NCBI RefSeq assembly: GCF_001194135.2
Contig: NC_068996.1
Location: forward strand, 25,415,328-25,474,534
DNA from: Octopus bimaculoides
Taxonomy: Eukaryota
Length of the DNA: 59,207 bases
Reading direction: 5' to 3'
Below, one piece after another: positions 9,089-53,739 of this stretch. A program made the translations under genes and the position numbers. Below the pieces are notes generated by a model. It worked only from the letters and a program-made list of their open reading frames with translations. It had not been told where the DNA came from and did not search any database. Every line of letters begins with the position of its first letter. Position 1 is the first letter of the stretch.

Positions 9089-9272
9089 CGTGCGGGTGAC
9101 ACGTAAAAGCACCCACTACACTCTCTGAGTGGTTGGCGTTAGGAAGGGCATCCAGCTGTAGAAACTCTGCCAAATCAGACTGGAGCCTGGTGTTGCCATC
9201 CGGTTTCACCAGTCCTCAGTCAAATCGTCCAACCCATGCTAGCATGGAAAGTGGACGTTAAACGATGATGAT
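9089..9272 (+). mobile_element. RTE LINE 3' end with (GAT)n tail
   Basis: ...ccaacccatgctagcatggaaagtggacgttaaacgatgatgat; near-identical reverse complement at 55281-55480. Confidence 0.8.
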
Positions 9273-20415: not shown

Positions 20416-21718
20416 GTAGAAGTAAGGACCCGAAGCCTTCAAAGGGATGTTTAGNNNNNNNNNNNNNNNNNNNNNNNNNNNNNNNNNNNNNNNNNNNNNN
20501 NNNNNNNNNNNNNNNNNNNNNNNNNNNNNNNNNNNNNNNNNNNNNNNNNNNNNNNNNNNNNNNNNNNNNNNNNNNNNNNNNNNNNNNNNNNNNNNNNNNN
20601 NNNNNNNNNNNNNNNNNNNNNNNNNNNNNNNNNNNNNNNNNNNNNNNNNNNNNNNNNNNNNNNNNNNNNNNNNNNNNNNNNNNNNNNNNNNNNNNNNNNN
20701 NNNNNNNNNNNNNNNNNNNNNNNNNNNNNNNNNNNNNNNNNNNNNNNNNNNNNNNNNNNNNNNNNNNNNNNNNNNNNNNNNNNNNNNNNNNNNNNNNNNN
20801 NNNNNNNNNNNNNNNNNNNNNNNNNNNNNNNNNNNNNNNNNNNNNNNNNNNNNNNNNNNNNNNNNNNNNNNNNNNNNNNNNNNNNNNNNNNNNNNNNNNN
20901 NNNNNNNNNNNNNNNNNNNNNNNNNNNNNNNNNNNNNNNNNNNNNNNNNNNNNNNNNNNNNNNNNNNNNNNNNNNNNNNNNNNNNNNNNNNNNNNNNNNN
21001 NNNNNNNNNNNNNNNNNNNNNNNNNNNNNNNNNNNNNNNNNNNNNNNNNNNNNNNNNNNNNNNNNNNNNNNNNNACCTCCCCTGTTAATAATTATATTTC
21101 TTCTCACAAATACGCCCACATTTTTGTTGGTCTTTTCACGTGCTCTTTGTCAATAAAAAATACGATTCCTTCGTAATTGTTTAACGAAACTATGACACGT
21201 TTCGGTTTAAGAATGGTTACTTTTTTTTTTTTTTTATTCTTTATGTTTAAGTCAAAGGTGGGGAGATTAAGAGAATTGTGCAGCAAATACGGAAAGATAT
21301 ATCCACTTCTTTTTTAAGGATGCTAATATATGGTTTGAGTGGTATTTGGCTGCTATTTCTAGAGTGCCTACTTAATGTTTTTACGAAACACAAAATGTGA
21401 AGAAAAAATAAGACTAAAAAGTCTCCGGAAAAGTTCAATAAGATAACTGATTTAATACATTTTTCTGTTGTTCCATTGTTCTGTTTATAAGATGTTGAAC
21501 ATAACGTGATTTGTGTGTGCGTGTGTGAGTTAGTGTAATGCCATCATTACAAAAGCTGTATTTGCAATTGTGTACACTATGTAACGTCAGTTAATGAGTA
21601 GAGCGTAATATTTAAATGACGATATTTTTTTTCTTTTGCCATTTACCACTAGCTCATTAGGACGTTGTTTGGTTATCAATGACACTCAGTAAGAACTGTG
21701 AGGTAGAAGAAGGTAGCC

Positions 21719-28287: not shown

Positions 28288-28380
28288 TTAGATTGTGCTG
28301 TCCTCCAATTCAGCAGGGTCGTTAGTAGGTTCCAAAGAGAGCGATGGGGAAATTCTGCTGGGATCATCAAACAAAGTTTC
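28288..28380 (-). CDS. Membrane-protein gene, terminal coding exon: ETLFDDPSRISPSLSLEPTNDPAELEDSTI*
   Basis: Strong acceptor ttttgttttcctctttag, phase 0 matching the upstream exon, ends TAA. AATAAA on the minus strand at 28118-28123. Confidence 0.8.
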   Translation of the reverse strand, partial: ETLFDDPSRISPSLSLEPTNDPAELEDSTI

Positions 28381-29771
28381 CTAAAGAGGAAAACAAAAAT
28401 AATTTACAATTTATATTTTGGGAGAGAATTTTGTTAGAAGCAATAAACCAATATGTAAGTAAGATTTGGCAAAGCTACAGGATGCAACAATAGAGTTATT
28501 TATTAATTTAGTGAAATATGAACTTTTAGTGTAATGTAAGTGAAGTTTAGTGCCAATTTTTAAATATTTTTTGTAAAATTTTAATTATCATTATTTCTTC
28601 ATTATAAATAACGATTCAGTTGCTAGTAGGGACCTCAACTCTTTTGCATAAAAAGGGTTTGCAGGACTTTATAGGGATGTTTTCTAATCTTACTTAACTA
28701 TCAGCATCATTATTATCCAAACTGCTATAAATAATTTTATTTGTAGTTAAGGCCCAGACACACATACAAAATTTGGGGAATATACGAAATAATCACAGTT
28801 GTACATAATAATTATTACCTAATAATGTATCATCATCATCGTTTAACGTCCGCTTTCCATGCTAGCATGGGTTGGAATACAGTTTATAAATAATATATAT
28901 TCACACAAAACTGTTACAAAGCAGTTGTTAACATACATTATTATACCAGATGTTGCTCTACAATATGTGTATATTTATGTGTATATATGTATATATATGT
29001 GTGTGTATAAATGCATGTATGTATGTGCTGCATTTGTGTTAGATGAATGTATTATCTGTCTTTGTTCTATATGTTTGTTTGTGTTAATAAAAAAGAAAAA
29101 TGTATGGTAAGTGATTCCATTGTTTATTTTTAACAAATAACTTACTTGGTTCAAATCTGAACTATAAAGTGGGTTATTGAATTCTTGGTTGTTGTACGCA
29201 TTATTTGTATTTCCTCCACTGGCTGAGCGGTTAGTTGACTAATCAAAGATAATGGAAAAACAATTGGTAAGTACTATATTTCTATTTTTAAAAAAAAATA
29301 TATTTCTTAGTAAAGTGGCACAGTTTTAAAGTTTACCAGATATGGTTTGAATAAAGTAAAAAAAAAAAATTAGAAATCATTTGAAAATTAGCCTGATATT
29401 ATTAAGCAGAAAACATTTCATAATTTTCATGTAATATTGTATAATAAAATAAGTTTTGGACATTAAAAATAATTTATATTTCAAATCATTCTTTAACTTA
29501 AAACTAATGCCCCTTTCTTTGAAATTCTTGAAATTTCAATAAAATGTAAATATTTTCAACTATTTTTGGTTAATGCTAAAATTTTCATTTACAGGTTTGG
29601 TAACAAAGACAAAACCGAAAAGCCACATGTAAGTTAATTTTCTAACCAGACTATTTAATTTAGCTAATTGAACAGTTATTGTAAACTGATTTATTTTCGT
29701 GTGATTAAAATACTAAGAGCTGCTAGACTATTTTATTTAACAACTGTTGTGGTTTTGAGGTAAAATTTTTG

Positions 29772-29792
29772 TTAAATTTCTCCTTCAGTAAT
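29772..29792 (-). CDS. Possible alternative terminal exon ITEGEI*
   Basis: Acceptor cctttctctaataattag, phase 0 compatible. Very short, so chance occurrence is possible. Confidence 0.25.
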   Translation of the reverse strand: MTEGEI

Positions 29793-30355
29793 CTAATTAT
29801 TAGAGAAAGGTTTAAAATAGTACAATTGTGTTTGTAATATGATGTATAATGCAGACATTACATTTTGTTCTACTACATTTCTTGTATATATGTTTATATT
29901 TTTCAGGTATAAAACAGTTCAGTCCTAAGACCACATTTGAGACTTCTAAATAGTAGTTTAGATAAAATAATATATAGGAATTTAGCTTTGAGTAAATATT
30001 AAGCATAGGGATAAAAGTCTTCAGAAGTCTTACATTTATAAAGGAAATCATTTAACTCTTAATTACAATTCAGCCTCAGACCACATGTATTAAGTATTCA
30101 TATTCAAATTAAATTCTTGATCAAAATCTCATCAGTTAGTCAACACCAAAATAATGACCAATATATATATATATAAACAAATAGTTACAGATATCCTACT
30201 ATATCATTTCAAAATGCTGATTATACTGAAAATTGAAACACACTGATAGAAATAATCATGAAAGTGTATAAAAATTACATTAAAAATATGGTGCATTTGA
30301 CCAAGAAAATTCATTTCTGAAATACATTCATTGAAAGAATATTTATTGAACCTAC

Positions 30356-30506
30356 TTCAGCACCATAAACTGGATTTTGGAATCCTCCTTCATTATGATA
30401 TGTTGGACTTGGTAGATCATCTAATGGGACAGTGTCTTGATTAATAAATCTGCTGTGAATGTTAGGGAAGAATTGTCCTGATGTAAACGGATTGGCAAAA
30501 TTACGC
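30356..30506 (-). CDS. Cytoplasmic-tail exon: RNFANPFTSGQFFPNIHSRFINQDTVPLDDLPSPTYHNEGGFQNPVYGAE
   Basis: ttttcag acceptor, GAA|GTAGGT donor, 151 nt, phase 2 to 0, open frame with FQNPVY. Confidence 0.88.
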
Positions 30507-31228
30507 CTGAAAAATATACAAACATGTATTTATTACATATTTATCCAGAGTGAGAACCAGGCTACAAATGCAATGCATTACGAGCTTAATATTATAAGAG
30601 CAATTAAGAAAGATTTTAAGATGATTTCAAGTTGTTTTATTGGAATATAGAAGCATTTTTAAGCTGTTGTAAACTATTTTTGTATGATGCAAAAATCTGA
30701 AGTATTTATCCATTACAATTTGATTTTCAGTCTATATGTAGGTAAAAATTATTCACATATGCTTTTGTCAGAGAAATGAACTATACTTGGACTAAATGGC
30801 TCAACACAGAATGGATCCTCTAATAGCATCCAAGTTGGTAGTGTTTTACATCCATACAATTTCTTTTTATCAAATTACACTCATAAGACACTAATTCTCT
30901 TGAGGATAATGTTGAAGACACTTGCCCAAGGTGTTGTATTCTTAGATTGAACCCGAAATAAAGATATTTGCGAGACAAAACTGCCTAACCACACACCCAA
31001 GCGTGCTGTGTCCACAAATAGCAAAGCACTTTTGTTTTCTTTAATATCGAAACTTATGAATTAATAGCAATAGGGTTAGTATTTGGTTATTCATTGAATA
31101 TGGAAGTGAAACAATGAAATATAAAATTAAGGTAAGTGCAAATAATTTTAATACAGATTTTGAAATTATCATAATTTAAATTGTTCATGAAAAATAAAAA
31201 CTAATTTCTTTTCTTTCCTTCTCTACAG

Positions 31229-31750
31229 GTTGTAAGATCATTGGGTAATAACAATAGGAAATAGTATTGTTATAAGTGGCTGACTGGACTTACATGTTAC
31301 CTCTTCTGTAGAGGAGAAGTAATATAACAATCAATAGAAGCAATATCAAACTGCCCAAAGTGAATCCAAGGACTGCAGCAGTTGAAAATCCACCTGGGAA
31401 GAAGAAGAATAAAAGGACTGTATATTAGAAAATATGAGTTGATGTAAAATCATTAATGTGTTTATATGTTGTATTATAAAATGTTTTTTAAAGAAGTAGA
31501 TTAAAAAAAAAAAGTATTTTTGATGGTAAGAAAGATTATTTTTCTATGTGTAAGTATAAATTGCGAAAAAGATGAAGAAAGGAAACAAGAAAATTAGGTG
31601 AGTTGAGTTACTTGATAATCTTATCATACCGATCTTAAAATGACCTTTTCCTGTTTTTCTAATTCTCTTTCTGTTTTATTGCAGGTATTGTATAAATACT
31701 GGTTCTGTTCAGAAATAGAACTAGGTTGAATGCAGAAATTGTGAAATAAA
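31229..31750 (+). ncRNA. Candidate spliced antisense RNA exons (31229-31597, 31685-31750; also 29595-29628)
   Basis: Paired consensus plus-strand sites: AAG|GTAAGT 31132, ttttctttccttctctacag 31228, TAG|GTGAGT 31598, ttctctttctgttttattgcag 31684, AAA|GTAAGC 31751. No long ORF. Confidence 0.4.
31294..31393 (-). CDS. Transmembrane exon: GGFSTAAVLGFTLGSLILLLLIVILLLLYRRGNM
   Basis: ttcttcttcttcccag acceptor, AT|GTAAGT donor, 100 nt, phase 1 to 2. ~22 hydrophobic residues followed by an RR stop-transfer. Confidence 0.92.
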
Positions 31751-31801
31751 GTAAGCCAACAATACAATTTTAAACACTATCTTGTTTCAAATGGCTTTTA
31801 A

Positions 31802-32029
31802 CCCTTTTGATATCAACCCACCTGAGACATGCTGTTGGTCCTAGGATACAAAATTCCTGTTTTAACATTTTAATCTAAGTTAAAACTTTCTATTGAAATT
31901 TCATGTCAATTTCTGTTCCAAATACCAGTTTAATAATGATAAAGTTATCTTACTAAATTTTTCGTTATTCTCAAAATACATAAACAACAAAAGCAGTGTA
32001 TTTTTCACAAAAATATAGTAACAAAAAGG
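31802..32029 (+). mobile_element. piggyBac-like MITE
   Basis: TTAA-CCCT... at 31798-31805 and ...AAGG-TTAA at 32026-32033. A second partial copy ends agggttaa near 32265. Confidence 0.6.
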
Positions 32030-32577
32030 TTAAAAACTGTTTCTCAGCTATTATGATTATTTGGGTAGCTCAGTTTATATTTTTTATGCCTGTCAGAGAC
32101 AGCTCTTGATGATATAAAAAACAAAACAAAACCTTTCATTAAAATTTTATGATAATTTATGTTCGTAAAACCAATTTGATAAATTCTTCCTTATTTTCAT
32201 TCAAAATTAATTGAAAAACAAAGTTATATATATAAGCAACAGAAATTGGTAACAAAAGGGTTAAATATAAACAAAAAATGGTATAGATTGTATTGCTATA
32301 GCCTTTGTTTTGATATGAGCGAAGTCTTTAACATAATTTTCCAAACTATGTTCTGACAGCATAAAGTGTTTATACATTTCCTTTTAATATAATTACTATG
32401 TTATTATCACTGATATACTGTTAATAATAATGATAATGTACCCAACCCCCAAATAATGTATCCAATTAATAATAATGATAATGTACTCAATCCCCAAATT
32501 GTAAATATTTTAACGTATATTTTTTTTTTTACTTTCAGCTAACAAAAACTTCCTTCTTGTTATTTTTGTAACATTAC

Positions 32578-32880
32578 CTGTAGGTTCAACTTTTATGTTA
32601 CGACCACTCTCAGGTTTACCATAGTCCTGTGCAGTTGTCTTTTGACTTGTTCTTTGTGTTGTTGTTGTTGTTGTAGTAGTACTGGTTGTTTTTGTTGCTG
32701 TTGTCCATGTTTGTTTTGTCTTTTTTGTAGTTGATGACACTGTTGCTGGTGTTTTTGTTGTTGTTGTTGTCAATGTTGTCGATGTCTTTGTTGTTTCCGA
32801 AGGTCTCTTGTTTCTTGGCGTTCCAGAAACTTTTATCTCAACTGCTGAAAATATGTATTTGTAACCTCCATGCGTTATGT
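32578..32880 (-). CDS. Thr-rich mucin-stalk exon: DITHGGYKYIFSAVEIKVSGTPRNKRPSETTKTSTTLTTTTTKTP...QDYGKPESGRNIKVEPT
   Basis: ttttctctcaaaacag acceptor, CAG|GTAATG donor, 303 nt, phase 1 to 1. An in-frame alternative acceptor exists at 32844. Confidence 0.88.
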
Positions 32881-35479
32881 CTGTTTTGAGAGAAAATGAT
32901 TACATTTAGAATTTACTGTATCAAGGCATTGTATCAATATTTTAAAAAAGTTTTGATTGTGAAAATTGAAGAGAAAATAAAATTATGCTTCTTTGTATTA
33001 TTCTTTATTTATAAACATGGACAAAACTGGCTGATTTACAGCATTTTAAAATTATATGTTTCAGTTTGTGTAAAATCATGTGAATATACGCATGTTGTAG
33101 AGCAATGTGGAATATGTATGTTTGTAGACAAATGAAAAACTTGTTTTGATATTCTAATACTTTAGAGAAACATTTAACAAATTAGTTGAAGGACTAAATT
33201 TCTAACAGCTGTAATTAAATTTACATATATTATTGTTAACTGTGCCTTCTTGATTGTTAATACCTTCCATGAGATCAATACGTACACCCTTGGTAGATCA
33301 TATGTATAGACTTTGTACTGATTCTTGGGAAAGTGGGAAAAGAGAGAGAGAGAGAGCAATACACTTATAACCAGAATTTATATCAGAAGTAAAAAATAGT
33401 AGTAGTAGTGTTTCTTTTAATTGGCCACTTAGCAAATTAGTTTGGGAAATACCTATAGAAAATCAAATAATGTAAGAATTCTGTTAAACATTTTTCATGG
33501 CAATTACTAATTTTAAGCTTGAAAAAGAAACAAAGATATAGCTGACTCAACTATAAATTTTATCTTAATATGTTTTTAATGTTATTTTCTTATCTTATTT
33601 GCATATAGTTACCTGCACATTTCCTAATAGGTTATTGTTTCATTCTGAAAGTGACTAAATGGACTTTATACTTAGAAGGAAAAAAGAGAAATACTCCTCT
33701 CCCTATATCACCATCAATAGTTTTGGAGTATTTTTCTCATGAGCAAAGTTTATTTTTTGATATATACTTAAAATGTTAGATACAGTTCTTCGAAATTTTA
33801 TTAAAACCAGTTTAGCTCTTTGCTTCTTAAGACTTAGATTAACTAAATAAATTGTTTTTTTAAATATTTGCTTGGTTTTTCAACTTTGAAGCAGTTATAA
33901 TTGAGGTAGTAATTTATTTTAAATTAAATAAGATATTTCATAAACATTTATCTCATTTGTTTTGTCTTATCTAACATTAAGTTTCCTTAAAAGTTAATTC
34001 ACTGGATTTGGTTCAATTAACATTAAATGCTAAATCTTTCTCATATTGGTTTTCTAGCAACATTCTGTTCCATTTGGGAATGGGGAAATTAAAAACTTTC
34101 ACATTAACATTGCTTAAGTGAATGAAAAAAACGTCTCAAATAACCACAAACGATTGTTTAGCCACCATAATTTAGGGGTATGATTTGAAGGAAATCTGGT
34201 CTGCTATTTCTAGCAGACCAAGCAGTATTGTAAAATGTCCCATGTTCACAAATGCCATAAACCGAAGAAAAGTTACAAGGTTTAATAGAACTACTACCAA
34301 TCTTGAAAGTCAAGATTTATAAAATATCTCAATTGCATTTAATTTCCTTAGTCTACTAAACTAAATTTGAAAAATCACTTTAATTTTGAAATGTAACACT
34401 TGAAGTACTGTTTATCTGCGGGAGTTTATTACAACCATTGAAATCCCAACCAAACTTCATCTAATGTTATGACTAAATTGCGTATAATACTTTTTCCTAA
34501 ATTTTTTAATAATTATGTTATTCTCTTGCATTTTTAAGAGAATTCACTAAATATCAGTAGTTTCTTGATATAATTTACTGTACAATAGGTTGGCATATCT
34601 AATATTTTATCAGTTGCAGAGCATAAACTCTGTTTCACACTGTATTGACTAAATGACTTCAATTATGTTAGAACTGAAATGTAACAAATCAGTTTTTTTT
34701 TTTACTGTTTTCATACTAACCATGCTGTAACTGCTCCTGGTTCTATAAATCACACTTCCTGTTTTAAAGTGATTCAAATTAAAACCTTCCATCAAGACTT
34801 GATGTTAATTTATGTTCCAAACATTAGTTTAATAACTAACAACAGTTATTTTACCTAATTCTTCATCAGAAATATGCTAATAAAAGAGTTTGCCTTTCTG
34901 ACTTTACTCCTTCTATACGATGACTACATTAATTTACATGTGACATTTTTACGGTTTATTCCTGCCAATATTATTGCAATATAGTTTTTCTTTTCTTTTT
35001 TTTCCTCTTTAATATGCATGACTGACCTATGTTGAGATTGCTAGTATTACAGTCCTTTTGTGTATTCAATATCTTTTATTTTTGCCCTTTCTTTCTTTGC
35101 TACCACAAATCCCCAATAATGAACAACTTGTTCTCTCTATCCTTTTTCTCTCTTTGTAGATCTGAGCACTGATCTTTAATTGCAGTCATTATTTTGTGAG
35201 TGTCAATCTCACTATGCTGCTTCCCTCATTCCTCTTCACCCACTGTTTCATGTTTCAAGTGCTTTTTATTGTCCAATTCACACACCTTTTTCTATTTCAG
35301 CCTCTTATATTCTTCAGTTTATGTTTAGCTCACTACTATGAATTACCCAAAGTTCTGAGAACATTGCCTCAAATTAGGTAAAGTCTTTCACCTTTCAGAA
35401 TTGGTTAATTTGGCCAGGTTGACTCTTCTTTTTGTTTGAAGACTACTGGCTTCAATTTATTATCTTCTCTGAGTATTCA

Positions 35480-38400
35480 CATCACTTGTCTCTGTCTTAG
35501 TACACACTCTCTTATGATGTGTCCCAACTCCATTCCCTCTCCAACTATTTCACATTTTGTACAAGCTTAAACTATATTGTTTACTAATCTCTCTTATGAA
35601 GAGCACCAACCTTCCCTTATCTGAAGTGTACAAAATTTTTTTCCCCTCACAAATTTGCTGTCCTAAGATACAATATCTATTTCTTCCTTTAATCGCTCTT
35701 TTATGAGAGTTCTCATTCATAAATTTATTTCAGGAAGAGCACAAATTTTGTTTTCTATCTATTTGCTCTATCATGAGAATACTGTTTCCTCATTTTCTCT
35801 AATGAAGATAATGGTCCTTACATTCCCACCTGTATGAGCATTAACCCCATATTCTATCTGAGCTAATTTTTATGAAGTGACATGGCCCTATTCTTCCTCT
35901 CAGTTCACACTCATAGAGTATATACACCCCATTCTCTTCCAGTTCACTCTCTTATGATGTGTACTGACCCTCTCTCCTAGTACATTGACCTTATTCTTTC
36001 ACTGAGGTTTCTTATGAAGTGTACAGCTCCAGTTCTCTGTATTCCAGCCCACAGACCAACTTCTCTTCCCTGGACCTTTTTTATAAAGTGTAATGACCTT
36101 ATTCTTTCTCCTAAAGTGTGCATACTATTTTATCTCTTCCAATTGTACTGGCCAGCTACCCTTTCAGTTAACGCCCTTATGTATACAGATCCTATTCTTT
36201 GTCTTAGCACACACCCTTTATAATGTGTCCTAAAACCTTTTCTTTCTCTTGCCCAGCTCACTCTTATGAAGTGTACTGGTCCTTTATTCTTTATCTCAGT
36301 TAAGGCCCTATTCTTTTTCTTAGCACACTATCTTATGATGTACCCAAACTCCCTTTCTCTCTCACTCAGTTGATAATGACAATCTTATGTGAACAGGCCC
36401 ATCTCTCTATCTTAGTATACACACAATGATGTGTTTTAACCCCTTTCTCTCTCTCTCACAGCCCACTCTTATGAAGTGTTTGGTTCTATTCTTTCTCACA
36501 GTTCAATTTCTTATGAAGTGTGTACGTCCCCCCTCCCATCTCACTCTTTTTAAAGTCTACTAGCCCTCAGTTCACCTTTTTTATGAAGTGTACAAACCTT
36601 ATTCTCACTTTTCCAGTTCTCTCTTTTATGAGGTGCCCGGGGCCTTGTTTGGACACTATCCTCCTCTCAGTTCTCTCTCTTGTGTCCTGGCCCTATTCTT
36701 TCAGATCACTCTCTTATGAAGTGTACAAACCAAATCCTGTCTCTATCCTCTCTCTCAGGAGGTGTCCTGGGCCTTGTTTGGACCCCATCCTTCCTCTTTC
36801 AGTTCTCTATTATGCCCTGGGCCTATTCTCTCTCAGTTCACTCTCTTATGAAGTGTACTGGTTCTTGTACAAACCCTACACTCCCTCTCTTTTATGAGAT
36901 GCTTTGGCCATTATATAAAACCCCGTTTCCTCTCTCATGAGGGGGGTCTTGGCCGTATTCTCTCTCTCTCTCTCAGTTCCCTTTCTTATGAGGTGTACTG
37001 TCCTAATTCTCTCTCTTAAGTTCACTCTCAAAAGGTGTCCTGGGCCTTGTTTGGATCCCATCTTCCCTCTTTCAGTTCCCTCTCTTATGAGATGTCCTGC
37101 CCCTATTCTCTCTACAGGTCCCTCTTATGAGATGTCCTGTCCCTATTCTCTTTCACAGGCCCCTCTCTTAGGTGTCCTGGACCTAATCTCTCTCACACAG
37201 GTCCCTCTCTTACGAGGTGTCCTGCCATCTATCCTCTCTTATGAGGTGTCTTGGGCCTAATCTCTCATTCTGTTCCCTCTCTTATGAGGCTTCCTGGCCC
37301 TATTCTTTCTCTCTCTCATGCCCCTCTCTTATGAGGTGTACTGGCCGTTCTCTCTATCTCTCTCTGTTCCCTCTCTTATGAGGTGTCCTGGCCCTATTCT
37401 CTCTCTCTCTCTCAAGCTCCTCTCTTATGAGGTTTACTGGCCATTCTCTCTTATGAGGTATCCTGGCCCTATTCTCTCTCTCAGGCTCCTCTCATGAGGT
37501 ATCCTGGCCCTATTCTCTCTCTCTCAGGCCCCTCTCTTACAAGGTGTACTGGCCATTCTCTGGCCCTATTCTCTCTCTATCTCTCTCTCTCAGGGCCCCT
37601 GTTCTCTCTGTGAGATGTTTTGGCCCTATTCTCTCTCTCAGTTCCCTCTCTTATGAAGTGTCTGACCCTGTTCTCTCTTTCTCTTATTTCCCACTCTTAC
37701 AAAGTATCCTGGCATCTTTTCTCTCTCTCTCTGTTTCCTCTCCTACGAGGCATCCTGGCCTTGTTCTCTTTCTCTATCCCCTCTCTTACAAGAGTGTTCT
37801 GGCCCTGTTCACTTGCTCTCTCTCCCTCTCTTACAAGGTGTCCTGGTCCTGCTATCTCTTCTCAGTTCCCTCTCTTATGAGGTGTTCTGGCCCTTTTCAC
37901 TCTCTTTTATGAGGTGTCCTGGCCCTGCTCTCTCTCTCTCTCTCTCTCTGTTTCCTCTTAACCCTATTCTCTCTCTCTTTCTCAGTTTCCTCACTTACAA
38001 GGTGTTCTGGCTCTATTATCTCTCTTATGAGGAGTCCTGGCCCTGTTCTCTCTGTTTCCTCTATTATGAGGTGTTCTGGCCCTATTCTCTCTCTCTTCCC
38101 TCTCTTATGAGGTATCCTGGCCGTATTCTGTCTGTTAGTTCACTCTTTTAAGAAGTGTCCTGACCTTTGTACAGACCCTATCCTCCTCCTCTCAGTTCCC
38201 TCTCTCATGAGGTGCCCCATCCCCATACTCTTTGTTCATTCCCTTAAGAAGTACACAGCTCTATTCTCTCTTACTCCTAGTTCACTTTTATGAAGTACCC
38301 TGGCTCTATTCTCTTTCTCCCAGTCCATTCCTTCAGAACTATACAAATGCTATTCTTTCTTTTTCAGCATACATACACATGATGTACATTAGACCTATTC

Positions 38401-38950
38401 TTTCTCACAGTATCCTGATCCTATCCACTCTTTTTCCAGCTTTACACTTTTATCAAGTGTATTCTCTCTCTAGTTTAGGTTTAAGTGTTAACCCTACTCT
38501 TTCTCCTAGCAGACACTTTTAAAGTGTACATGCCCTATCCTCTTTAATCCTAGTAGACACACACAAATTCTTATGAAGTGTACTGGCACTATACTCCTCT
38601 CTTCTTGTAAGTTTAGACCCTTGTAAAGTGTACATGTCCTATTCTCTCTCTCTTTCTGTGTTACACATTTTGGTGTAGAGACTTAATTTTCCCTCTCATA
38701 GCACATACTTATATGAAAAGTTCTGGCCTTATTCTCTCTCCCAACCCACACAAAGTATTCTGGTATCATCTTCCTCTTAACTCACTTATGATTAATACTG
38801 GTCCTGTTACCTCCTCTCTCCATCTCTCATGAGCAATGCCACCTCTCTGCTCCTAAGTATACTTGTTCTTTTTCCCCTCTCTCAAACTAAGTGCAATGTA
38901 GTTTTCTCAGGCATGTTGCCTTTATGAAACACTACTACTCTTGATCTCTA
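35480..38950. repeat. Degenerate ~40-47-bp pyrimidine-rich minisatellite in a 9-kb intron
   Basis: Core unit ctcttatgaggtgtcctggccctattctctctctc recurs dozens of times; best conserved ~36560-38230, decaying outward. Confidence 0.9.
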
Positions 38951-40416
38951 TCTATGTGTTGTGTATTGTCTATTTCTTTTCTCAAGTACCCCTACTGGCT
39001 TGTTTTTATTAGAAACACCAACCCATATTTTCATTTCAATTGTTATTACCCCCTGAGAATACTGTCTTTCTGTGTTCACCTTTTTTAAAATCCCCACTTA
39101 TCTTTGAAAAAGCATAAAACCCTAAACTCTATTTTTTCCTCAAAAGCCCCCATTCCACTTCTATTTCAAGATTCCATGGATCCTCAACTTTTCTCTCTCA
39201 AAACTTTTTGCTCTTATTTTGAAAATACCAGCTTTTCTGGCATTTTAAAAAAGAGTACCAACTGTATTTTCTTAATATTTGCTCAAATAAAGAGCAGTGT
39301 TTTTTGTGATTCAGGCATATTCTTTATGTTCTATCCCTCAATAGCTCCATCAGTGGAGTAACTCAACTGCTACAACCCTGCCTTCTATCACCTACTACTA
39401 TAACAAAGAATCCAAACCCAACCATTTATCCTAAGGTGTTATCCATCTCGGTTGTTTTCCTCTGCCATTCCTTGTCCTGCTTTTTCCTGAAACCTAATTT
39501 TGTTGTTATCTGCTTAAAGTTACCATTTAAAATCACTCACAACTTTTGCAGTCAATCCTTTTTGTATTTGTTATTTTCATTATACTAACCAAACCTCAAT
39601 CTGTTCAATTGATTTTAGCACCTCTTGTGATTTTAATTCATCACTGCAGCCAACTTTCAATATTTGCTTCATTATTACAGTCTCATCGTTTTCTTCCCTT
39701 TCTCGGATAAAATCTGAAGTGACTGTTTCAAGTCAACTCCCTGTTAACTTCAGTTCTCTCTACTGACATTAGTCTACCCTTCATAATTCTGTTGATTAAA
39801 AAGATATTTTAGAATACTTGACTGTGATGCTATCTTTCTCATATACAATCATAATGTATATCATTGGTCTCAAGCATATGAAATCATAATTTTTTTTTAA
39901 TGCTTTTATGTTTTGTTTATGTTTAAAATTATGGGGAAGATTAATATTTTAAGTGATCATTATTTTTGTCATTGTCCAACTCTGAAGAGTACTTTTCTCC
40001 AATAAAAAAAACTTTTCACATACATTTGAAATCATAAAGCAACTATAAGTTTTAAAATATTTTCTATCACTGCTGCCACTGTAAGTGACTTGGTATTTAA
40101 AAATATTAACTATTGTAAATTATTGTGTATTATGTAATTATCAAAGGTTTTTAAATATGAATCATTGTATATCAAATTGAATAAAGTGTGATAAACTGAA
40201 TAAAGTTTCTTTTTCTTTTCTTTTTGTATTACAAATCAGAACTAAAAATGTATGAAATCATCATCACCATCAATGTCAGGTCAGGTTCCATACTGACATG
40301 GGTTGGTCAAATCTAAATATAATTTACCCAATTGTGATATATATATATATACACACATACATATCATACAAGAGTAGATAAATGAAAACTTTAGTTAAAT
40401 TGAAGAATATTAAGTA

Positions 40417-40475
40417 AAGACCCTGAAGAAACTGCACCAGTGTTATAGTTGGGTTGCAGCTGAAACGTAGGTCTT
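40417..40475 (+). ncRNA. Type-I minimal hammerhead ribozyme motif
   Basis: Stem I AAGACC/GGUCUU, core CUGAAGA (40423-29), stem II CUGCA/UGCAG extended by CCAG/UUGG, GAAA (40462-65), C, then cleavage triplet GUA (40467-69). Confidence 0.75.
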
Positions 40476-41019
40476 CGTAAAGTTATATATATATATATAT
40501 ATATATATATTTTAAAAGAATTAAAGGTAATGCTATGCAACTTTGTAATAATCCTTATTGTTGTTGATATATTATCATATGACAGCTGTCCATTCCTGAC
40601 TGAGGAAGACCAGCAATGCTTCTGCATGAAGTTACTGCACCTGCTATCAGTGGGTTTGCATCCACAGATTCCATGCCTACATGCTGCAGTGCCCTCTTAT
40701 TTGACTGGTCATCGTAAAGTTGCTTCCTCAGCGATTGCATAAGTCAAAATTTTAGGTCCAATAAGGCTTGTACAGCACCTCATAGACCCTCTCCACATTG
40801 GAGTGACTTTCTCCTAGAAGCATGCTTTAACAAGCTAAGTGTCTCACTCCCAGTGATCTTCCAACTTCTGAGGGCCTGTACTATAGCTAGATTGTTGTTG
40901 AACCTCACCAGGCAAGCTTAGTTGGGGTGTCAGTTTAGTTGCTGACAACCTGAGGACAAGAGGTATTGGACTCTATGTTAGCAGTAGCGTATATGAGACC
41001 TCACAAGTGACCTGACTCG

Positions 41020-41054
<35 letters not shown>

Positions 41055-41083
41055 GTATGTATATACATACATATATGTATGTA

Positions 41084-41124
<41 letters not shown>

Positions 41125-41145
41125 ATACATACATATATGTATGTA

Positions 41146-41185
<40 letters not shown>

Positions 41186-42046
41186 CATACAAAATGCTAA
41201 TGATAATTATGTAAAATTTCATAAGTGAGAACTTGAATCTGGCACTATAATGCATCTTAATGGCACCAAGATGATACATACTACTGACAGTTATGTAAAG
41301 ATTGTTTTAGCACTGTAACATGCTAGTTTCAGAAATATCTTTCACATTATCGATCTGAAGTTTATTATTCTAAATAATTAGAAACTTGTGGAAGTGTTCC
41401 ATCTCATGCACACAGTTTTTAATAAAAATAATTTCTACTGAATACTGTAAAACCACCAAGTTTACAAGTGAATTGTACTTCAGCTTTAGCACCCGGACAA
41501 ATAGGCTATACTTTCTTCCCCCTTCACATACATTTGTTCATCGATTTCTAGTTTCACTATACTTAACATCTACTTTTGACACAACTAATGCTAAAGACAG
41601 TTGGTCTCATGAAGGAAAGTATACCAATTAAGCAGTTACAACTACTACTGCTACAATCACCACCACCATCAGCTGCTTTATATACACAAGAAGCATATTT
41701 AAAAGTGATCACTCCAAATCAATCTATCCAATACATACTTTTATACTGTAAACTGAGAGAAGAGTTAAGTAGTAACTGCACACCCAATATATACACGAAA
41801 AAAAAAAAAAAAAAGACTAAACTGAAATGCATAAGTTCAATCTTCTCACAATTTTTTAGATTAAAAGTTAATGAAAATAAGAAAATATTGCAAACGAAAT
41901 TGTTTAAAATGTAAATATGAAAATATTCATTGATGAAATAAACTGATCTGAACACGCTGTACTGAACTATTTCACACCAGTCTGTATTGTATAAGTTTTT
42001 TTCCTCTCTGTATTTATAATAGTGTAAGTATAAACAATAAACTTAC

Positions 42047-42164
42047 CATCAATGATGTCCTCATATATTTTCTGACCAATAATCACACTATGTTCTCCAG
42101 TAATATCCATAAGCGTTAGCTGTATGTCATTATCGATTCTTGACACTATGAATTCTACATTAGT
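42047..42164 (-). CDS. Ectodomain exon: TNVEFIVSRIDNDIQLTLMDITGEHSVIIGQKIYEDIID
   Basis: ttctttctatctcaattctag acceptor, G|GTAAGT donor, 118 nt, phase 0 to 1, open. Confidence 0.85.
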
Positions 42165-42334
42165 CTAGAATTGAGATAGAAAGAAATTAAATATAAAAAC
42201 AGAAAACAAATATCATTTTGTATTTCAAGTTGAAAAAGATCAGAACACTCTATTTTCTACATGTTAGGTAAGTTAAAAAAAAAAAAATTTAGCAGGAAAG
42301 CTTAGCATAACCCACTACAGTGCTTGCAAGACTT

Positions 42335-42570
42335 AGCAGTAGCCAGTAATATGACACCTGGCCCAAATGGTTTCCACAGTGTAGACACTGATAAAAGCAC
42401 CCGTGGATGGATTAAGTCTACCACCCAAGTTGGCCAAAGCAGAATTTGAAACCAGCACGAATACTGCTAATGCATTGCAATTCTTACAGAGTTCTGCTAA
42501 ACCACCATTCTGGACAGATATTTTTACTGATCCTGAGAGGATGAAAAGCAAAGATGAATTTCTGATTTGA
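42335..42570 (-). mobile_element. SINE
   Basis: ggcagaatttgaa..agcacgaatactgctaatgcatt..ctaacagttctgc and gagaggatgaaaagcaaagatga..tgatttgaactcag; same family as 23082-23210. Confidence 0.55.
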
Positions 42571-43554
42571 ACTCAGGACTGAAAGGATCAAATAACAAGG
42601 TAATGTGATGTTCCAGACTGCCAATTCTCTACTTTTGAGATTAACTTCTTTTAGCATTATTAAAGTTTATTTATTTTCATAGTCAATAATAAATATTTTT
42701 ATATATTTAACCAATCAAGTATGCTTTTTTTAAACAGCTGACGTCAAATAAATTGCAAGATTTCTCAGTATCTGCCAAGTCAAACATGATCTGCAACCTA
42801 CCTAAATTCTAAGATTAATGAATGCAAATACCAGATTTTTTCTCTCTATGTAGTTAAAAATATATTGAAATTTATTTAGATTCATCAAAGCTTATGATAT
42901 TAGATAGAAGTGTACAATATTTGTACTATCAAGAAAGACCTGCATTCAACAGATCAAATATTTCAGACTTAATAACTTTTAACTGTGGGGAATTAACTTA
43001 AGGCCAGTATTATATTATAATTAACGGTCATTAACTTGTACAGCTGGTGATAGTTTGATACTTACATAAAATCAGCTTCCTTTTATCTATGGACTAATAT
43101 ATAATATTCTAAATACCAAGCATTTGTTACCTTCAAGAGAAAAATCTTTTATTTTTTATGTTTCCTGAAGCATTTGCACTGAATTTATTTACCATATATT
43201 AGTTTAATTATATAAAATGGTGATATATATATATAAAAAAAAGGAACAATTTGCGAAAATAAGTATTGATAATAGGAATATTTAACTCTAATGGAAAAAA
43301 AATACTCGCAAAGGGGGAAATAATTTGGTTACATAAATGGAAGGATTACTTCCCTTGTATCTTAACTATTACTTCACCGATAAACAAAAAAGCCACTCGA
43401 AGGCATAGGTTTCAAAACAGATGCATCTCAAAGGTTCTTTTGGAAGCATCATCAGTAATGTTCCTGGAGTCGTTGGTGGTTTCGAGGATTTTTTCAACAT
43501 CAAACAACGACAAAAAGTATAAAGGAAGTAAGAAAAATCCCGAAACTAACTTAC

Positions 43555-43640
43555 CGCATTCTGGAGGAATTTCTTTTTAATATCATCAACTAATCGATCA
43601 TAACTGAAACCATTTTCGTATTTGCATTTTAGAATAGCCC
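43555..43640 (-). CDS. Ectodomain exon: GAILKCKYENGFSYDRLVDDIKKKFLQNA
   Basis: tttatttttattttgtag acceptor, GCG|GTAAGT donor, 86 nt, phase 1 to 0, joins 42047-42164 in frame. Confidence 0.85.
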
Positions 43641-43937
43641 CTACAAAATAAAAATAAACAAATTTTAGAAATCAGACTTCAAAGGCTGAATGAAATAACA
43701 AAGCTGGAAGGAGTTCAAGCTATACTATTCCATTCAGATGATTGTTAATTTATCTTTCTACACTTGGAAGGTTCTTCAATATGAAACTTTTCACTAACAC
43801 AAATTGGCTGTTATGAAACTAAATTCATAATGTGTGTATGTGCATGTCTGTCTGTCTATATAAATATATATAACGAAGTCAAACCAAGTAACGATATTTT
43901 GAATGCACTTAATACATATATTTCAGATAATTTTTAT

Positions 43938-44246
43938 AGGCGCAGAAGTGGCAGTGTAGTAAGTAGCTTGCTTACGAGCCACATAGTATCGGGTTCAGTC
44001 CCACTGCGTGGCACCTTGTTTTTTACAAAGCCTTGTGAATGGATTTGGTATACGGAAACTGAAAGAAGCCCGTGTGTGTGTGTGCGTTTGTCCCCAGCCC
44101 ACATCGCTTGACAACCGATGCTGGTGTGTTTAGCGGTTCGGCAAAAAGGACCGATAGAATAAGTACTAGACTTACAAAGAATAAGTCCTGGGGTCGATTT
44201 GCTTCAGCATGGCCACAGTCAAATGATTGAAACAAGTAAAAGAGTA
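43938..44246 (+). mobile_element. tRNA-derived SINE (~300 bp)
   Basis: ggcgcagaagtggcagtgtagtaag..gggttcagtcccactgcgtggcacc..gaaactgaaagaagcccg..atggccacagtcaaatgattgaaacaagtaaaagagt; near-collinear with 51008-51395. Confidence 0.85.
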
Positions 44247-44749
44247 ATTGTGCAAAAGACAATGGACTTTCATCTCTTATGTAAAATCATCAGTTAATGT
44301 ATATCAATATATATACATACTCATACTTGAACCATCTCACTGCATGGACCAACTGGTGACAACATTAAATAGTGAGCATCCTATTTTTTTTTTTTGTGTG
44401 AGGGGTATAACCTCATTAGCACCACTGCCAAGATAAAATGCTGTGTAAAGTGGTTGCGGAACCAGTAGATAACAAAACCAAGAAGATCTTTTAGCCTATC
44501 TAGTACATTCAAAATTAGAAATGAAGTCAAATATGTTAGGCAAAAACTCTTTGTTTCATTTAAAGGAGCAGTAACTCTAAATAAGAACTGAACCAGACTG
44601 TGGTGACCTGTTCAACCTATGCCACTATGGAAAGTGAATGTAAAAATGACAATTTACTCTTACTTATTTCAGCCATTGGACTGTGGCCATGCTGGGATAC
44701 TACCTTGAAGGGCTTAGTCAAACAAACTGATCTCAGCACTTAGATATTA

Positions 44750-45318: not shown

Positions 45319-47676
45319 CTATTAAGAGGGAAAGAAGGTGAGGAATCAAAATATAAGTCACAACTTATATTTAGAAGAGGAGGAGAAAAAGTTGCTGAGA
45401 GAAATACAGTGAGAAGGAGAGAGAGAGAGAGAGTGTGTGTGTGTGTGTGTGTGATAGATAGATAGATGAATATGTAATATTGTCACCATAGTCACTAACA
45501 AGTTTTCATAAAAACGCAGGAATTTCAAGTGCAAGTCTGTCAACACAACGCAGCTTTAAAAAGAAAAAAAAAAGCTTTCACTATATAACAGTATAGTTTG
45601 GTTTTTCTACATGGACAACGCAACACATACCTTTAAAAAAATTTCACTATGACAGTCTGCTGTGAGAGAAATTTAGAGAGAGTGTGTGTGTGGGAGAAAG
45701 ACAAAATTTATTTCAAGAAAAAAAACGGNNNNNNNNNNNNNNNNNNNNNNNNNNNNNNNNNNNNNNNNNNNNNNNNNNNNNNNNNNNNNNNNNNNNNNNN
45801 NNNNNNNNNNNNNNNNNNNNNNNNNNNNNNNNNNNNNNNNNNNNNNNNNNNNNNNNNNNNNNNNNNNNNNNNNNNNNNNNNNNNNNNNNNNNNNNNNNNN
45901 NNNNNNNNNNNNNNNNNNNNNNNNNNNNNNNNNNNNNNNNNNNNNNNNNNNNNNNNNNNNNNNNNNNNNNNNNNNNNNNNNNNNNNNNNNNNNNNNNNNN
46001 NNNNNNNNNNNNNNNNNNNNNNNNNNNNNNNNNNNNNNNNNNNNNNNNNNNNNNNNNNNNNNNNNNNNNNNNNNNNNNNNNNNNNNNNNNNNNNNNNNNN
46101 NNNNNNNNNNNNNNNNNNNNNNNNNNNNNNNNNNNNNNNNNNNNNNNNNNNNNNNNNNNNNNNNNNNNNNNNNNNNNNNNNNNNNNNNNNNNNNNNNNNG
46201 TAGCTTTAAAAAGATTTAAGAGATTTAATTGCTAACTCTAATTGGTCAAACGACGATGGTTGGTAGAATATCTAGAGGTCAGGGCGTTGGTTAGTAATGA
46301 CCCATTAACGCTTTGAGTTCAATTCCCATTGTTCGATCGATAGAGTAAAATATCAGATAAGAACAGAGATCGGTGGACATTGGAATTAGACACTGAGGGA
46401 AAATGGCTGTAACTTTTTTATTTTTTAATTTTGGCGATTTTCGTTTTCGATGTGTTCTATATGTCACGGTCATGCGACCCCCCCCCCCCACACGATTTTC
46501 ATTTTTGACATTGTGTTCTACATGTCAAGGTCGTACGAATAGCCTTCTCGCAACTTAGATGTGAAAATGAACGGGATCGATTTAGTATTCTTACAAAGCA
46601 TCCAATATGCGAATTTGCGAATGAAATTGTAATAGAAAATATGTAAAGAGAAGTATTCTTATTCTCCGTTAAGACTAATAATTAAAGATGGCGAACTATA
46701 TACATACGGCTGTGGCTGAATCTGCATATACTCATGCAATTAACACACATCTGTTTATTTATATATAGGCGATCTTTCGATACTAATATATATATATAGG
46801 CAATCTTTCATACATACACACACAAAAAAAATGGAATACAATTTTATTTTCATATTTTACATCAATTAGTCCTTTGGGTAACTAAGTGATCGCTCGACCT
46901 TTTAGAAGTACTAGCTAAATCTCTAATTATCGTCTTTTTTTTTCTTTTTTTGAAAAAGGACATTTTGACTAATGAAGTGCACAATAAAAAGGACAAAGAA
47001 ACCCTCAAAACGTTTCAGACTCAGTACACCATCCAGTCGTCCACCAGGGTTAAATTGGGGACGCACACACATACACATGCGTGTTTTGCCTGAATAATTT
47101 TTTTCTTTNNNNNNNNNNNNNNNNNNNNNNNNNNNNNNNNNNNNNNNNNNNNNNNNNNNNNNNNNNNNNNNNNNNNNNNNNNNNNNNNNNNNNNNNNNNN
47201 NNNNNNNNNNNNNNNNNNNNNNNNNNNNNNNNNNNNNNNNNNNNNNNNNNNNNNNNNNNNNNNNNNNNNNNNNNNNNNNNNNNNNNNNNNNNNNNNNNNN
47301 NNNNNNNNNNNNNNNNNNNNNNNNNNNNNNNNNNNNNNNNNNNNNNNNNNNNNNNNNNNNNNNNNNNNNNNNNNNNNNNNNNNNNNNNNNNNNNNNNNNN
47401 NNNNNNNNNNNNNNNNNNNNNNNNNNNNNNNNNNNNNNNNNNNNNNNNNNNNNNNNNNNNNNNNNNNNNNNNNNNNNNNNNNNNNNNNNNNNNNNNNNNN
47501 NNNNNNNNNNNNNNNNNNNNNNNNNNNNNNNNNNNNNNNNNNNNNNNNNNNNNNNNNNNNNNNNNNNNNNNNNNNNNNNNNNNNNNNNNNNNNNNNNNNN
47601 NAAAACTGTTTTAAAAGTGTAAATCGAACCCGATCTATAGTAATTGCTGAAACTGTCAGACAGAGTGAGACATTAC

Positions 47677-48904: not shown

Positions 48905-50044
48905 TTCATTATTTTTTACTTGAATTTTATTTGACTGCCAAAACTCTGCAACCTCGTATATNNNNNNNNNNNNNNNNNNNNNNNNNNNNNNNNNNNNNNN
49001 NNNNNNNNNNNNNNNNNNNNNNNNNNNNNNNNNNNNNNNNNNNNNNNNNNNNNNNNNNNNNNNNNNNNNNNNNNNNNNNNNNNNNNNNNNNNNNNNNNNN
49101 NNNNNNNNNNNNNNNNNNNNNNNNNNNNNNNNNNNNNNNNNNNNNNNNNNNNNNNNNNNNNNNNNNNNNNNNNNNNNNNNNNNNNNNNNNNNNNNNNNNN
49201 NNNNNNNNNNNNNNNNNNNNNNNNNNNNNNNNNNNNNNNNNNNNNNNNNNNNNNNNNNNNNNNNNNAAATATGACCAACAGGAAAAGACATTTTTAAAAG
49301 ATTGTTATTGTCTTGACCCAAGTTTCTACAAAATACCTAAAAATCAAAAACATTCCAAACATAACTTTTTTTCCTAGATATATATTGTGAATCTTGAACT
49401 ACATTATTCCAGTGTATACTTCCTTTTGGGAAAAAAAAAAGATAAAAAATAAGGTATCATATGATGTAAACTGCTTTTTCTAGCAGGTCAAGCAACTGCA
49501 GAGGAACATCTGACGCTGTCATAGAGGAGCAGGAACAGTGTCCATGAATTTTGTAGACCTGACTGCTCCCTAGCAGATGAGATTGATGCCATTGGTTTTC
49601 AGGTTGATTATTTGTAGATCAATGCTTGCAGGAAATCTATGGGAGGTGGTTGAATTCGAGAGGGTCAGAGATGCAGTCCATGGGAAAAAAAAACAAGATT
49701 GGAAAAAAATAAAGAAAAGTATTTAGTATAGAACCTGGGAGAAGAAGAAACGGGTCAGATGAATGGATGTGGGTGGTCAGGGTCTGAAATTAAGCTAGTT
49801 CAGAGCTCATTTTAGTAATGATAGAAGAAAACAGAAATAAGAAATCATTGGCTAGACAGCTGTTGTAGTATGGTGTCTTGGGATGTGGTCTATGATACTT
49901 GTTTGTGTGTTTTGCTGCAGCACCATAGTAGGTCTTACTTGTAAATCACTGACATGTTCCTGAGATTATGTGATCTCACATTGTTTATGATGTGTCTTTA
50001 ATATGGCAGTGAATCATTTAATACCTTTACCTGTCTCATAGTGA

Positions 50045-50543: not shown

Positions 50544-51161
50544 TTATTACCTCTGCCTTAATGAAGGTGGAGGTATTATTTTCAGTTGTGTTTGTTTGTT
50601 TGTCCATGGACAAGATATCTCAAGAACTGCTGGATGGATTTGGATGAAACTTTCAGAGATGTTTGGCCTCATGACTGGCACAAACTGATTAAATTTTGGG
50701 ATCAATCTGGTTCCAGACAAGGATTCTGAATTATTTGTTATATTTACTTTACTTTAAATGATTACGATCTTACGTTGACTTTCAAGTCTTTCTCAATTAT
50801 CTCTCTATAGGCTGTTTTCAAAGTTTTACTTTCATTTCTCTATTATTAATTTTACTCGCATCTCTATCTTAGTAGTAGAAACTGATGGATAAAGAAATCA
50901 AACTACATAAACAAACATCAGCAAATCCGTTCAGAAATTAAATAACACTAACATATTTTATAATATATATAATATATTTTACAATATATATATATATATA
51001 TATATATGCGCAGGAGTGGCTGCTTACCAACCACATGGTTCCGGGTTTAGTCCCACAGCGTGGCACCTTTGGCAAGTGTCTTCTGCTATAGCCTCGGGCT
51101 GACCAAAGCCTTGTGAGTGGATTTGGTAGATGGAAACTGAAAGAAGCCTGTCGTATATATG

Positions 51162-51194
<33 letters not shown>

Positions 51195-51879
51195 TTGTCC
51201 CCCCCCCCCAACATTGCTTGACAACCGATGCTGGTGTGTTTACGTCCCTGTAACTTAGCGGTTCAGCAAAAGAGACCGATAGAATAAGTACTAGGCTTAC
51301 AAAGAATAAGTCTTGGGGTCAATTTGCTCGACTAAAGGCAGTGCTCCAGCATGGCCACAGTCAAATGACTGAAACAAGTAAAAGAGTAAAAGAGAGATAT
51401 ATATTATACATACATCTATACATTGATTTAAAACAACAGGAATACTAAAGGAAGGCCACAATTTAAGAGAAGAGAAAACCAAAATGTCTCATGTTATTCA
51501 TTTAAAAATTCCTGAGTAGAACTTATTACTATTACCTCTACCTTTGAAACTATTTTGAATGGTGAATTTGTTAACTATGGCTTGTATTAGATAAAGATAA
51601 ACTATTTATTACTGTTACTAAATTTTCTACAGCCACTTTCACATTCCGTGACTATCACTGGAACTGATCAGGTACTGGATAAAGATTCTGGATTATTTTT
51701 CTGTTATTTTTTTTTTACTTTATTTTTGAGAGCAGTCGGGTTCATTTTTAGTATTCTCGTTTGTGAGAGCAGTTGAATTTATTTCAGATATTCTCATTTT
51801 AAAAATCATCTCTGGTTAATCATTGAGAGGATGTTGGTGTTGCCTTGGCAGAGGTTTGCACTCTCTGAGTGCTCTTGTT
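50544..51879 (+). mobile_element. Helentron-associated (HINE-like) element split by nested insertions
   Basis: 5' ttattacctctgccttaatgaaggtggagg hairpin; 3' ccttggcagagg sub-TIR plus hairpin gcactctctgagtgc (51858-72). Left part to ~50740, right part from ~51658. Confidence 0.6.
51008..51395 (+). mobile_element. Full-length tRNA-derived SINE
   Basis: gcgcaggagtggct..ccgggtttagtccc..internal (TA)/(TG) tract..gtcaaatgactgaaacaagtaaaagagtaaaagag tail. Confidence 0.88.
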
Positions 51880-53006: not shown

Positions 53007-53739
53007 CGAGAGGTACCCAAAAGTAACCAGAAACGTTCTCTGTGGGACAAACCAGTTGTAGTTCAGGCTTCCGCCGCTAGAAGTCACTTGATGCAATCCT
53101 AGGACATTAGTCTGTCGACCGGCGTCGTCGGCTGATGTCGTAATTCCTTGTGGTGCGTCTTTGTTTTGCAGTGCTTCTCCCTCTATTTGTTGATTTTTAC
53201 GCGAAGGCTGAAACGAAGGAATAATGTGCTTCCGCGAAATTCTGTTTTCTTCTGGGGAAAACGGCGGCCGAAACAGTTGTCATGCTTCAAACAGCTTACA
53301 AGGACGCTGCCATGAGCAAAACAAGTTTACAAGTGGTTTTCACATTTTAGGAATGGTCACTTGTTGCTTGAAGACCAACCTTGTTCAGGACGACCGTCGA
53401 CCTCCAGAACGAATGAAAACATGAAAATTCATGAACTGATCTTAAAGGAGCGTCACTGTATAATTGATGAACTTGTTGATATGACGAGTGTGTTCTCGCG
53501 CTCCTGCCAACGAATTTTGAGCGAGGAATTGCAAATGAAAAGAGTTGCAGCAACGATGGAGGCGTTACAAGGCATCACTTTGCAAGAGATCCGGCATTGC
53601 TTCGAACAGTGGAAAACGTGTCTGGACTGATGCATTGTTTAAATGGAGAATACTTTGAGGCGATAAAAGTATAAACATGTAAATCTTAGGTGAATAAAAT
53701 AACATTGCAAAATTCCTGTTTCTTTTGGGTACCCCTTCG
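53007..53739 (+). mobile_element. Internally deleted mariner element
   Basis: TIRs cgagaggtacccaaaag / cttttgggtaccccttcg plus TA. Transposase N-half (VYKWFSHFRNG..LEDQPCSGRPSTS..SEELQMKRVAA) is fused directly to the C-terminus (ALQGITLQEIRHCFEQWK..GEYFE); the DDD core is missing. Confidence 0.88.

Follow-up and report, generated by a model that had tools for sequence, protein, structure and literature searches.

Positions 28288-43640 of the Octopus bimaculoides DNA analysed here (contig NC_068996.1, positions 25,415,328 to 25,474,534) almost certainly hold the last seven coding exons of the amnionless (AMN) gene, which encode the membrane-proximal module of the protein. The full stretch of 59,207 nucleotides (nt) is called the window below, and all AMN exons are read on its minus strand. 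AMN is a type I membrane protein and, in vertebrates and Drosophila, the membrane-anchoring and internalising subunit of the cubilin-amnionless receptor, cubam. Cubilin itself has no anchor in the membrane and bears the CUB domains that bind the ligands. The locus is already known: RefSeq names it amnionless, and the term 'hidden gene', used in a preliminary description of the raw sequence, does not survive the NCBI annotation. As the orthologue of a well-studied endocytic receptor subunit, the locus matters little beyond correct annotation.

Identity of the encoded protein

An exhaustive HMMER protein search showed that the peptide of 313 amino acids encoded by the seven exons is 100% identical over all 313 residues (E 5.7e-201) to a protein of 573 amino acids, P0001, which is XP_014768313.1, the RefSeq entry "protein amnionless isoform X2 [Octopus bimaculoides]". 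When P0001 was compared with the window by tblastn, residues 260-573 fell on exactly seven exons with 100% identity each; a lower tblastn figure for the match of the first exon is due to two residues read past the donor. P0001 matches the Pfam family Amnionless (PF14828) with 248 bits (E 2.2e-73; cut-off 30.4), and five mollusc homologues score between 240 and 286 bits. A profile of ten sequences (alignment A1) retrieved only 6gje_A, 'Protein amnionless', from the PDB (E 1.6e-49), and this alignment passes through the SEA segment, which is coded by the first three exons in the window. Named amnionless orthologues were found in Octopus sinensis (95%), Argonauta hians (69% identity to the full-length protein), Elysia chlorotica and the annelid Owenia; the Argonauta protein aligns across all six exons that had been described before. 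The full-length match to the PF14828 family, together with the RefSeq name and the profile match to 6GJE, overturns the earlier suggestion of a lineage-specific receptor that belongs to no recognised family.

A word-indexed protein search with the partial peptide gave no match at E ≤ 0.01. This empty result reflects the sensitivity limit of that search and not an absence of relatives, as the exhaustive search gave the exact protein. Searches of the PDB by phmmer with the partial peptide or the SEA segment yielded only weak irrelevant matches (LRP4 tail, annexin and tautomerase); 6GJE was reached only with the family profile.

Exon structure

The exons are listed in the order of transcription, together with the read-through that gives an alternative C-terminus.

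43555-43640, minus strand: first AMN exon within the window but not the gene's first exon; phases 1-0; codes (G)AILKCKYENGFSYDRLVDDIKKKFLQNA, the predicted SEA beta1 and alpha1, residues 260-288 of XP_014768313.1; Argonauta has an exon with the same phases
42047-42164, minus strand: codes TNVEFIVSRIDNDIQLTLMDITGEHSVIIGQKIYEDIID, the predicted SEA beta2, beta3 and most of alpha2; phases 0-1; tblastn 100%
32578-32880, minus strand: end of the predicted SEA alpha2, beta4 (YIFSAVEI) and about 80 residues of mucin-like stalk rich in Thr and Lys; phases 1-1; tblastn 100%
31294-31393, minus strand: single transmembrane helix (GGFSTAAVLGFTLGSLILLLLIVILLLLY), then the stop-transfer residues RRGNM; phases 1-2
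30356-30506, minus strand: membrane-proximal cytoplasmic tail with a non-conserved NPF and the first endocytic motif, GGFQNPVYG; phases 2-0
29146-29238, minus strand: codes STNRSASGGNTNNAYNNQEFNNPLYSSDLNQ, including FNNPLY, the second of the conserved endocytic motifs; residues 513-543 of P0001, 100%; phases 0-0
28978-29145, minus strand: donor read-through of 29146-29238, C-terminus of isoform X1 (XP_052829582.1, 599 amino acids), reading ...LNQVSYLLKINNG...HIYT
28288-28380, minus strand: last coding exon, ETLFDDPSRISPSLSLEPTNDPAELEDSTI, and TAA stop at 28288-28290; tblastn 100%

Six of these exons, all but 29146-29238, had been chained in the preliminary description and were confirmed. Their AG and GT sites, the phases (re-derived as 1-0, 0-1, 1-1, 1-2, 2-0 and 0-stop) and the quoted peptide proved exact, and each exon is 100% identical to the RefSeq protein by tblastn. 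All six acceptors have a pyrimidine tract and AG; the donors read GTAAG, GTAAT or GTAGG, except for the last exon. The exon chain is far beyond chance. However, it is not the complete six-exon gene that had been proposed. A seventh in-frame exon of 93 nt (29146-29238) with a TAG acceptor and a GTAAGT donor sits between exons 5 and 6 of the earlier chain and carries a second NPxY motif. The reference protein contains it, as does every full-length orthologue in the alignment save the O. sinensis model P0021, and the Pfam Amnionless match is gone when the tail is searched without it. A six-exon isoform skipping 29146-29238 would be in frame, but none of the annotated isoforms has this form, and a conserved motif would be lost with the exon; the skip was treated as an omission.

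The first exon in the window opens with a phase-1 acceptor at 43640 and has neither an ATG nor a signal peptide, and the chain is therefore the 3′ part of a larger gene. At the other end, the 3′ untranslated region (UTR) runs to lower coordinates, with AATAAA, a poly(A)-like signal, at 28123 and 27992. Exon chaining and the inference of fold and motifs from the raw sequence had thus worked, whereas recognition of the family and of the completeness of the gene had not.

SEA domain, stalk and transmembrane helix

The βαββαβ ectodomain of ferredoxin- or SEA-like type that had been read from the sequence was borne out by structure prediction. AlphaFold2 (AF2) was run on the window-encoded segment alone (93 amino acids) with a ten-sequence alignment (A2). 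The resulting model (pLDDT 90, pTM 0.82) has beta1 at 2-8, alpha1 at 14-25, beta2 at 33-39, beta3 at 42-48, alpha2 at 53-71 and beta4 at 79-86, and a Foldseek search of the PDB placed 6gje_A first (TM-score 0.71, query-normalised; probability 1.00), followed by generic ferredoxin-like folds. The published architecture of AMN comprises an SEA domain directly before the transmembrane helix, a Cys-rich region and two beta-helices (PMC6283879). The AF2 model of the full-length octopus protein was poor (pLDDT 46), with residues 240-350 confident, and was not used for fold searches.

The Pfam SEA family (PF01390) gave no match at E ≤ 10 with the whole peptide or with the domain alone, the ectodomain segment alone had no significant Pfam family match, and the sequence shows no G/SVVV motif for autoproteolysis. 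Judged by the model, the domain is of the SEA type by structure, through AMN rather than through the Pfam SEA family. In contrast to the mucin-type SEA proteins (MUC1, enterokinase and agrin; PF01390), the octopus stalk lies between the SEA domain and the membrane and not N-terminal to the SEA domain; the homology is to the SEA domain of AMN and not to those of mucins.

The Thr/Lys-rich stalk predicted earlier is present, with about 80 residues, and is found in the three octopod sequences of alignment A1; most other orthologues are without it. An independent S/T-rich insert was found in Gigantopelta. Within the window the stalk shares its exon with SEA beta4, and a degenerate 33-bp tandem repeat at 32689-32795 lies inside this exon. 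Compared with human AMN, in which the SEA domain directly precedes the transmembrane helix (PMC6283879), the octopus protein inserts the stalk between the two. The ectodomain is followed by the hydrophobic stretch STAAVLGFTLGSLILLLLIVILLLLY and RR, which form the transmembrane helix that had been described before. The topology is single-pass, type I, and AF2 places a helix at residues 433-458 of P0001.

Motifs of the cytoplasmic tail

FQNPVY in exon 30356-30506 had been noted before; FNNPLY lies in the additional exon 29146-29238. Among the ten lophotrochozoan AMN sequences of alignment A1, F504, N506, P507 and Y509 of the first motif and F532, N534, P535 and Y537 of the second are invariant or nearly so. 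Two FXNPXF internalisation motifs are required for endocytosis of AMN (PMC8710305). Their deletion largely kept the trafficking of cubilin to the membrane, yet led to slit-diaphragm defects as under blocked endocytosis (PMC8710305).

In the earlier reading of the tail, an amnionless-type tail had been named and the FxNPxY motif picked out, and both stand. Its proposal that NPF serves as an EH-domain signal was weaker: NPF lies within RNFANPF, which is common to O. sinensis, but Argonauta has NHI at this place, and the motif was given no weight. The C-terminal DSTI, also described before, fits the pattern of a class I PDZ ligand and is common to five mollusc sequences, namely those of Octopus, Argonauta, Elysia and Gigantopelta and the transcript P0002. 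The last is encoded on a 999-nt intron-free contig (L001) of run SRR24189504 from another species, which, like a spliced mRNA, runs without a break through an S/T-rich stalk, the transmembrane helix, both motifs, DSTI, the stop and the 3′ UTR. In eight listed titles and abstracts, out of 26 papers that pair amnionless with PDZ, no PDZ ligand is attributed to amnionless.

The octopus protein shares with AMN (PF14828; human 6GJE) the C-terminal order of an SEA domain near the membrane, a single transmembrane helix and two FxNPx(F/Y) motifs, and over its whole length the product fits the family model from one end to the other. In comparison with human AMN, the octopus motifs end in Tyr and not in Phe, and the tail is extended, ending in DSTI. 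The human tail ends shortly past the second motif and is not known to have a DSTI-like ending. Members of the LDL-receptor family (LDLR, LRP2/megalin and LRP4) likewise use FxNPxY for PTB adaptors (Dab2/ARH), and megalin, too, ends in a PDZ ligand. However, the octopus protein is without LDL-A, EGF and YWTD modules. The window peptide weakly matches the transmembrane and tail region of LRP4 (E 0.026), and the likeness is confined to short linear motifs and the transmembrane segment, so that it amounts to analogy and not to family membership.

The 5′ part of the gene and alternative gene models

Residues 1-259 of P0001, with the signal peptide, two predicted beta-helix domains and the Cys-rich region, have no match in the window by tblastn with P0001, a scan for CC..C peptides or a search with a degenerate DNA pattern for ...HCCNIC. 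The signal peptide is present in P0001 and coded outside the window. Residues 21-326 of P0001 align to positions 1-312 of PF14828, in keeping with the invariant cysteines and with the way the profile aligns to 6GJE.

The Argonauta hians amnionless gene, which spans 97.6 kb, offers a guide to where the upstream exons may lie. Its Cys-rich exon ends CAT TGC TGC AAC ATT TGT G/gtgaga at L002:36776, and the next exon starts ag/GA GCA ATT CTT AAA TGC at about L002:74127. The 37-kb intron between them has the same phase-1 split as the 43640 acceptor of the window. At the junctions checked, intron positions and phases of the Argonauta locus are the same as in Octopus, and the equivalent of 30356-30506 has identical boundaries and phases. 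The window holds just 15.5 kb upstream of 43640. As the equivalent Argonauta intron measures 37 kb, the 5′ exons would not be expected within these 15.5 kb, and they most likely lie beyond position 59207. In principle, a short exon could also be placed within one of the N gaps of the upstream intron (45729-46199, 47109-47601 or 48962-49266).

Two further models of the octopus gene are on record besides P0001. Isoform X1 (P0018) matches the open frame 28978-29238, with a stop just below 28978. Its tail is low-complexity intron sequence, and the isoform is probably a retained-intron model rather than one with a functional tail. The UniRef entry A0A0L8HYG4, "Uncharacterized protein", is an older truncated model of the same gene.

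In O. sinensis, the amnionless isoform X1 (P0021) departs after ...NPVYGAE into VGSINTFKECISEMNF.... The point of divergence is where the exon-5 donor is read through and intron sequence begins; there, positions 30314-30355 of the window read GAEVGSINILSMNVFQK followed by a stop; P0021 probably carries a retained intron and is without the true second motif and the DSTI end. Two short proteins from other assemblies (P0003 and P0004) overlap single exons and then continue into intron, e.g. ...EPTGNVTKITRRKFLL... and ...EDIVDGEFIVY...; they are incomplete gene calls, made on genomic contigs of Octopus species without splicing.

Proposed function

Most likely, by analogy, the function of the octopus protein is that of amnionless elsewhere, and for cubilin docking, adaptor binding and an endocytic role we draw on published work on other species. 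The N-terminal beta-helix domains, which are coded outside the window, would dock the cubilin trimer, while the SEA domain, the stalk and the transmembrane helix would keep the complex at the membrane. As with the FXNPXF motifs of AMN in mammals and flies, the two FxNPxY signals would, by analogy, recruit PTB-domain clathrin adaptors of the Dab2/ARH type, and this recruitment would drive constitutive, ligand-independent endocytosis of the complex. AMN reportedly engages ARH or Dab2, according to a paper in the reference list of the study on the internalisation motifs. The preliminary description had named an endocytic receptor and with it the right functional class. A literature search on cubilin in cephalopods yielded nothing useful.

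For the distinctive parts of the protein, a more tentative proposal can be made, which we think possible but would not call probable. Molluscan AMN tails may have a conserved C-terminal class I PDZ ligand and octopod AMN may have gained a mucin stalk, in which case an apical PDZ scaffold might tether cubam, and the complex might stand at a greater distance from the membrane. If true, this would make it a known receptor with a lineage-specific variation and not a new system, with a PDZ tether as for vertebrate megalin. The Tyr-type motifs, DSTI and the octopod mucin stalk could interest work on cubam evolution and on invertebrate nephrocyte-like and renal endocytosis.

Alternative explanations

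Some observations count against the assignment to amnionless or against parts of the proposed function. Taken alone, the 313 residues encoded in the window score 24 bits against the Amnionless model (E 2e-5; model positions 303-441 of 442, transmembrane helix and tail), which is below the cut-off of 30.4, since two thirds of the model correspond to exons that the window does not contain; the family assignment thus rests on the 100% identity with the RefSeq model of full length. In the AF2 model of the whole protein, the beta-helix part is of low confidence (pLDDT about 30). Furthermore, with Tyr in place of the Phe that ends the motifs of mammalian AMN, the choice of adaptor could differ. The sub-threshold Pfam score, the empty word-indexed search and an ectodomain that alone has no significant Pfam family would all fit a self-contained six-exon gene for an orphan, lineage-specific endocytic or adhesion receptor. 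Against this stand the 100% identity to residues 260-573 of an annotated amnionless, the phase-1 acceptor without start codon or signal peptide, the seventh conserved exon within the span and a family found from annelids to humans, which leave the orphan receptor with a negligible probability. The exons could also represent a duplicated or decaying 3′ fragment of amnionless, a pseudogene or partial copy outside any expressed gene, as the window is without the 5′ exons and has seven N gaps and much transposon debris, and no contig is on record as coding for precisely the P0001 product. However, each of the seven exons is intact and free of stops and frameshifts, the splice sites are canonical, and the exons equal the RefSeq model exactly, and the absence of the 5′ part is expected from the 97.6-kb Argonauta gene with its long intron just upstream of the equivalent exon. 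A decaying copy is therefore very improbable.

A further alternative accepts the protein as a true amnionless and attributes to its octopod and molluscan additions, the stalk and DSTI, a role beyond cubilin or independent of it, such as PDZ-scaffolded apical retention, or a part in the glycocalyx or in adhesion. The absence of the stalk from most aligned orthologues and the human SEA domain directly preceding the transmembrane helix are consistent with this, as are the five mollusc sequences with DSTI, an ending for which the listed titles and abstracts name no counterpart in amnionless. On the other hand, the full-length protein has kept the N-terminal half that would dock cubilin, the insertion of a stalk is a common kind of neutral variation, and a motif of four residues may be kept for other reasons. 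We consider a role of this kind unlikely, and favour amnionless with its usual function in cubam.

Surroundings of the exons

The window is AT-rich and contains seven N gaps of 92-792 nt, of which four lie downstream of the gene (8791-9088, 12437-13228, 15954-16045 and 20455-21074) and the other three in the upstream intron as given above. No second gene was found in the window, the remainder of which consists of transposon debris and simple repeats on both strands, and Rfam gave no match in it.

The 9.2-kb intron between 42047 and 32880 harbours, at about 36000-38400, an extensive array of degenerate CT-rich tandem repeats of 40-47 bp (consensus about CTCTCTTATGAGGTGTCCTGGCCCTATTCTCT) with very strong GC/AT skew, which yield long spurious open frames on both strands. 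Downstream of the gene, remnants of retrotransposons without long terminal repeats were detected on the minus strand at 13671-15222, where RVT_1 matches with 50.7 bits at 13671-14123 and two adjacent open reading frames match nothing, and at 18803-19525, with a zf-RVT match of 31.7 bits at 18803-19093. Short open frames at 4605-4898 (minus), 5650-5994 (minus), 10186-10578 (plus) and 58194-58427 (minus) share the motif ...VVD.FCYLG...L..SV/RL.DAC.QTA.LH..E.W...; those tested had no Pfam match, and the motif resembles the C-terminal part of reverse transcriptases of the long interspersed nuclear element type. Three frames on the plus strand (7462-7686, 8014-8274 and 53316-53627) contain '...GFGHSTIHQHL...', which is helix-turn-helix-like, and '...KWFSHFRNGH..LEDQPCSGRP...'. 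They have no Pfam match at E ≤ 0.01 and are presumably pieces of mariner/Tc1-type transposases. Finally, dispersed repeat copies occur in the introns and flanks in the pairs 43937-44286 (minus) and 50941-51318 (minus), 8772-9209 and 55353-55817, and 28846-28974 and 55310-55468. Their translations share strings such as 'FAEPL..NTPASVVK.C..G.N.HTH', 'LPNANHSESVVGAFTCHPH' and 'PTHASMESGR', and the copies are probably similar to short interspersed nuclear elements.

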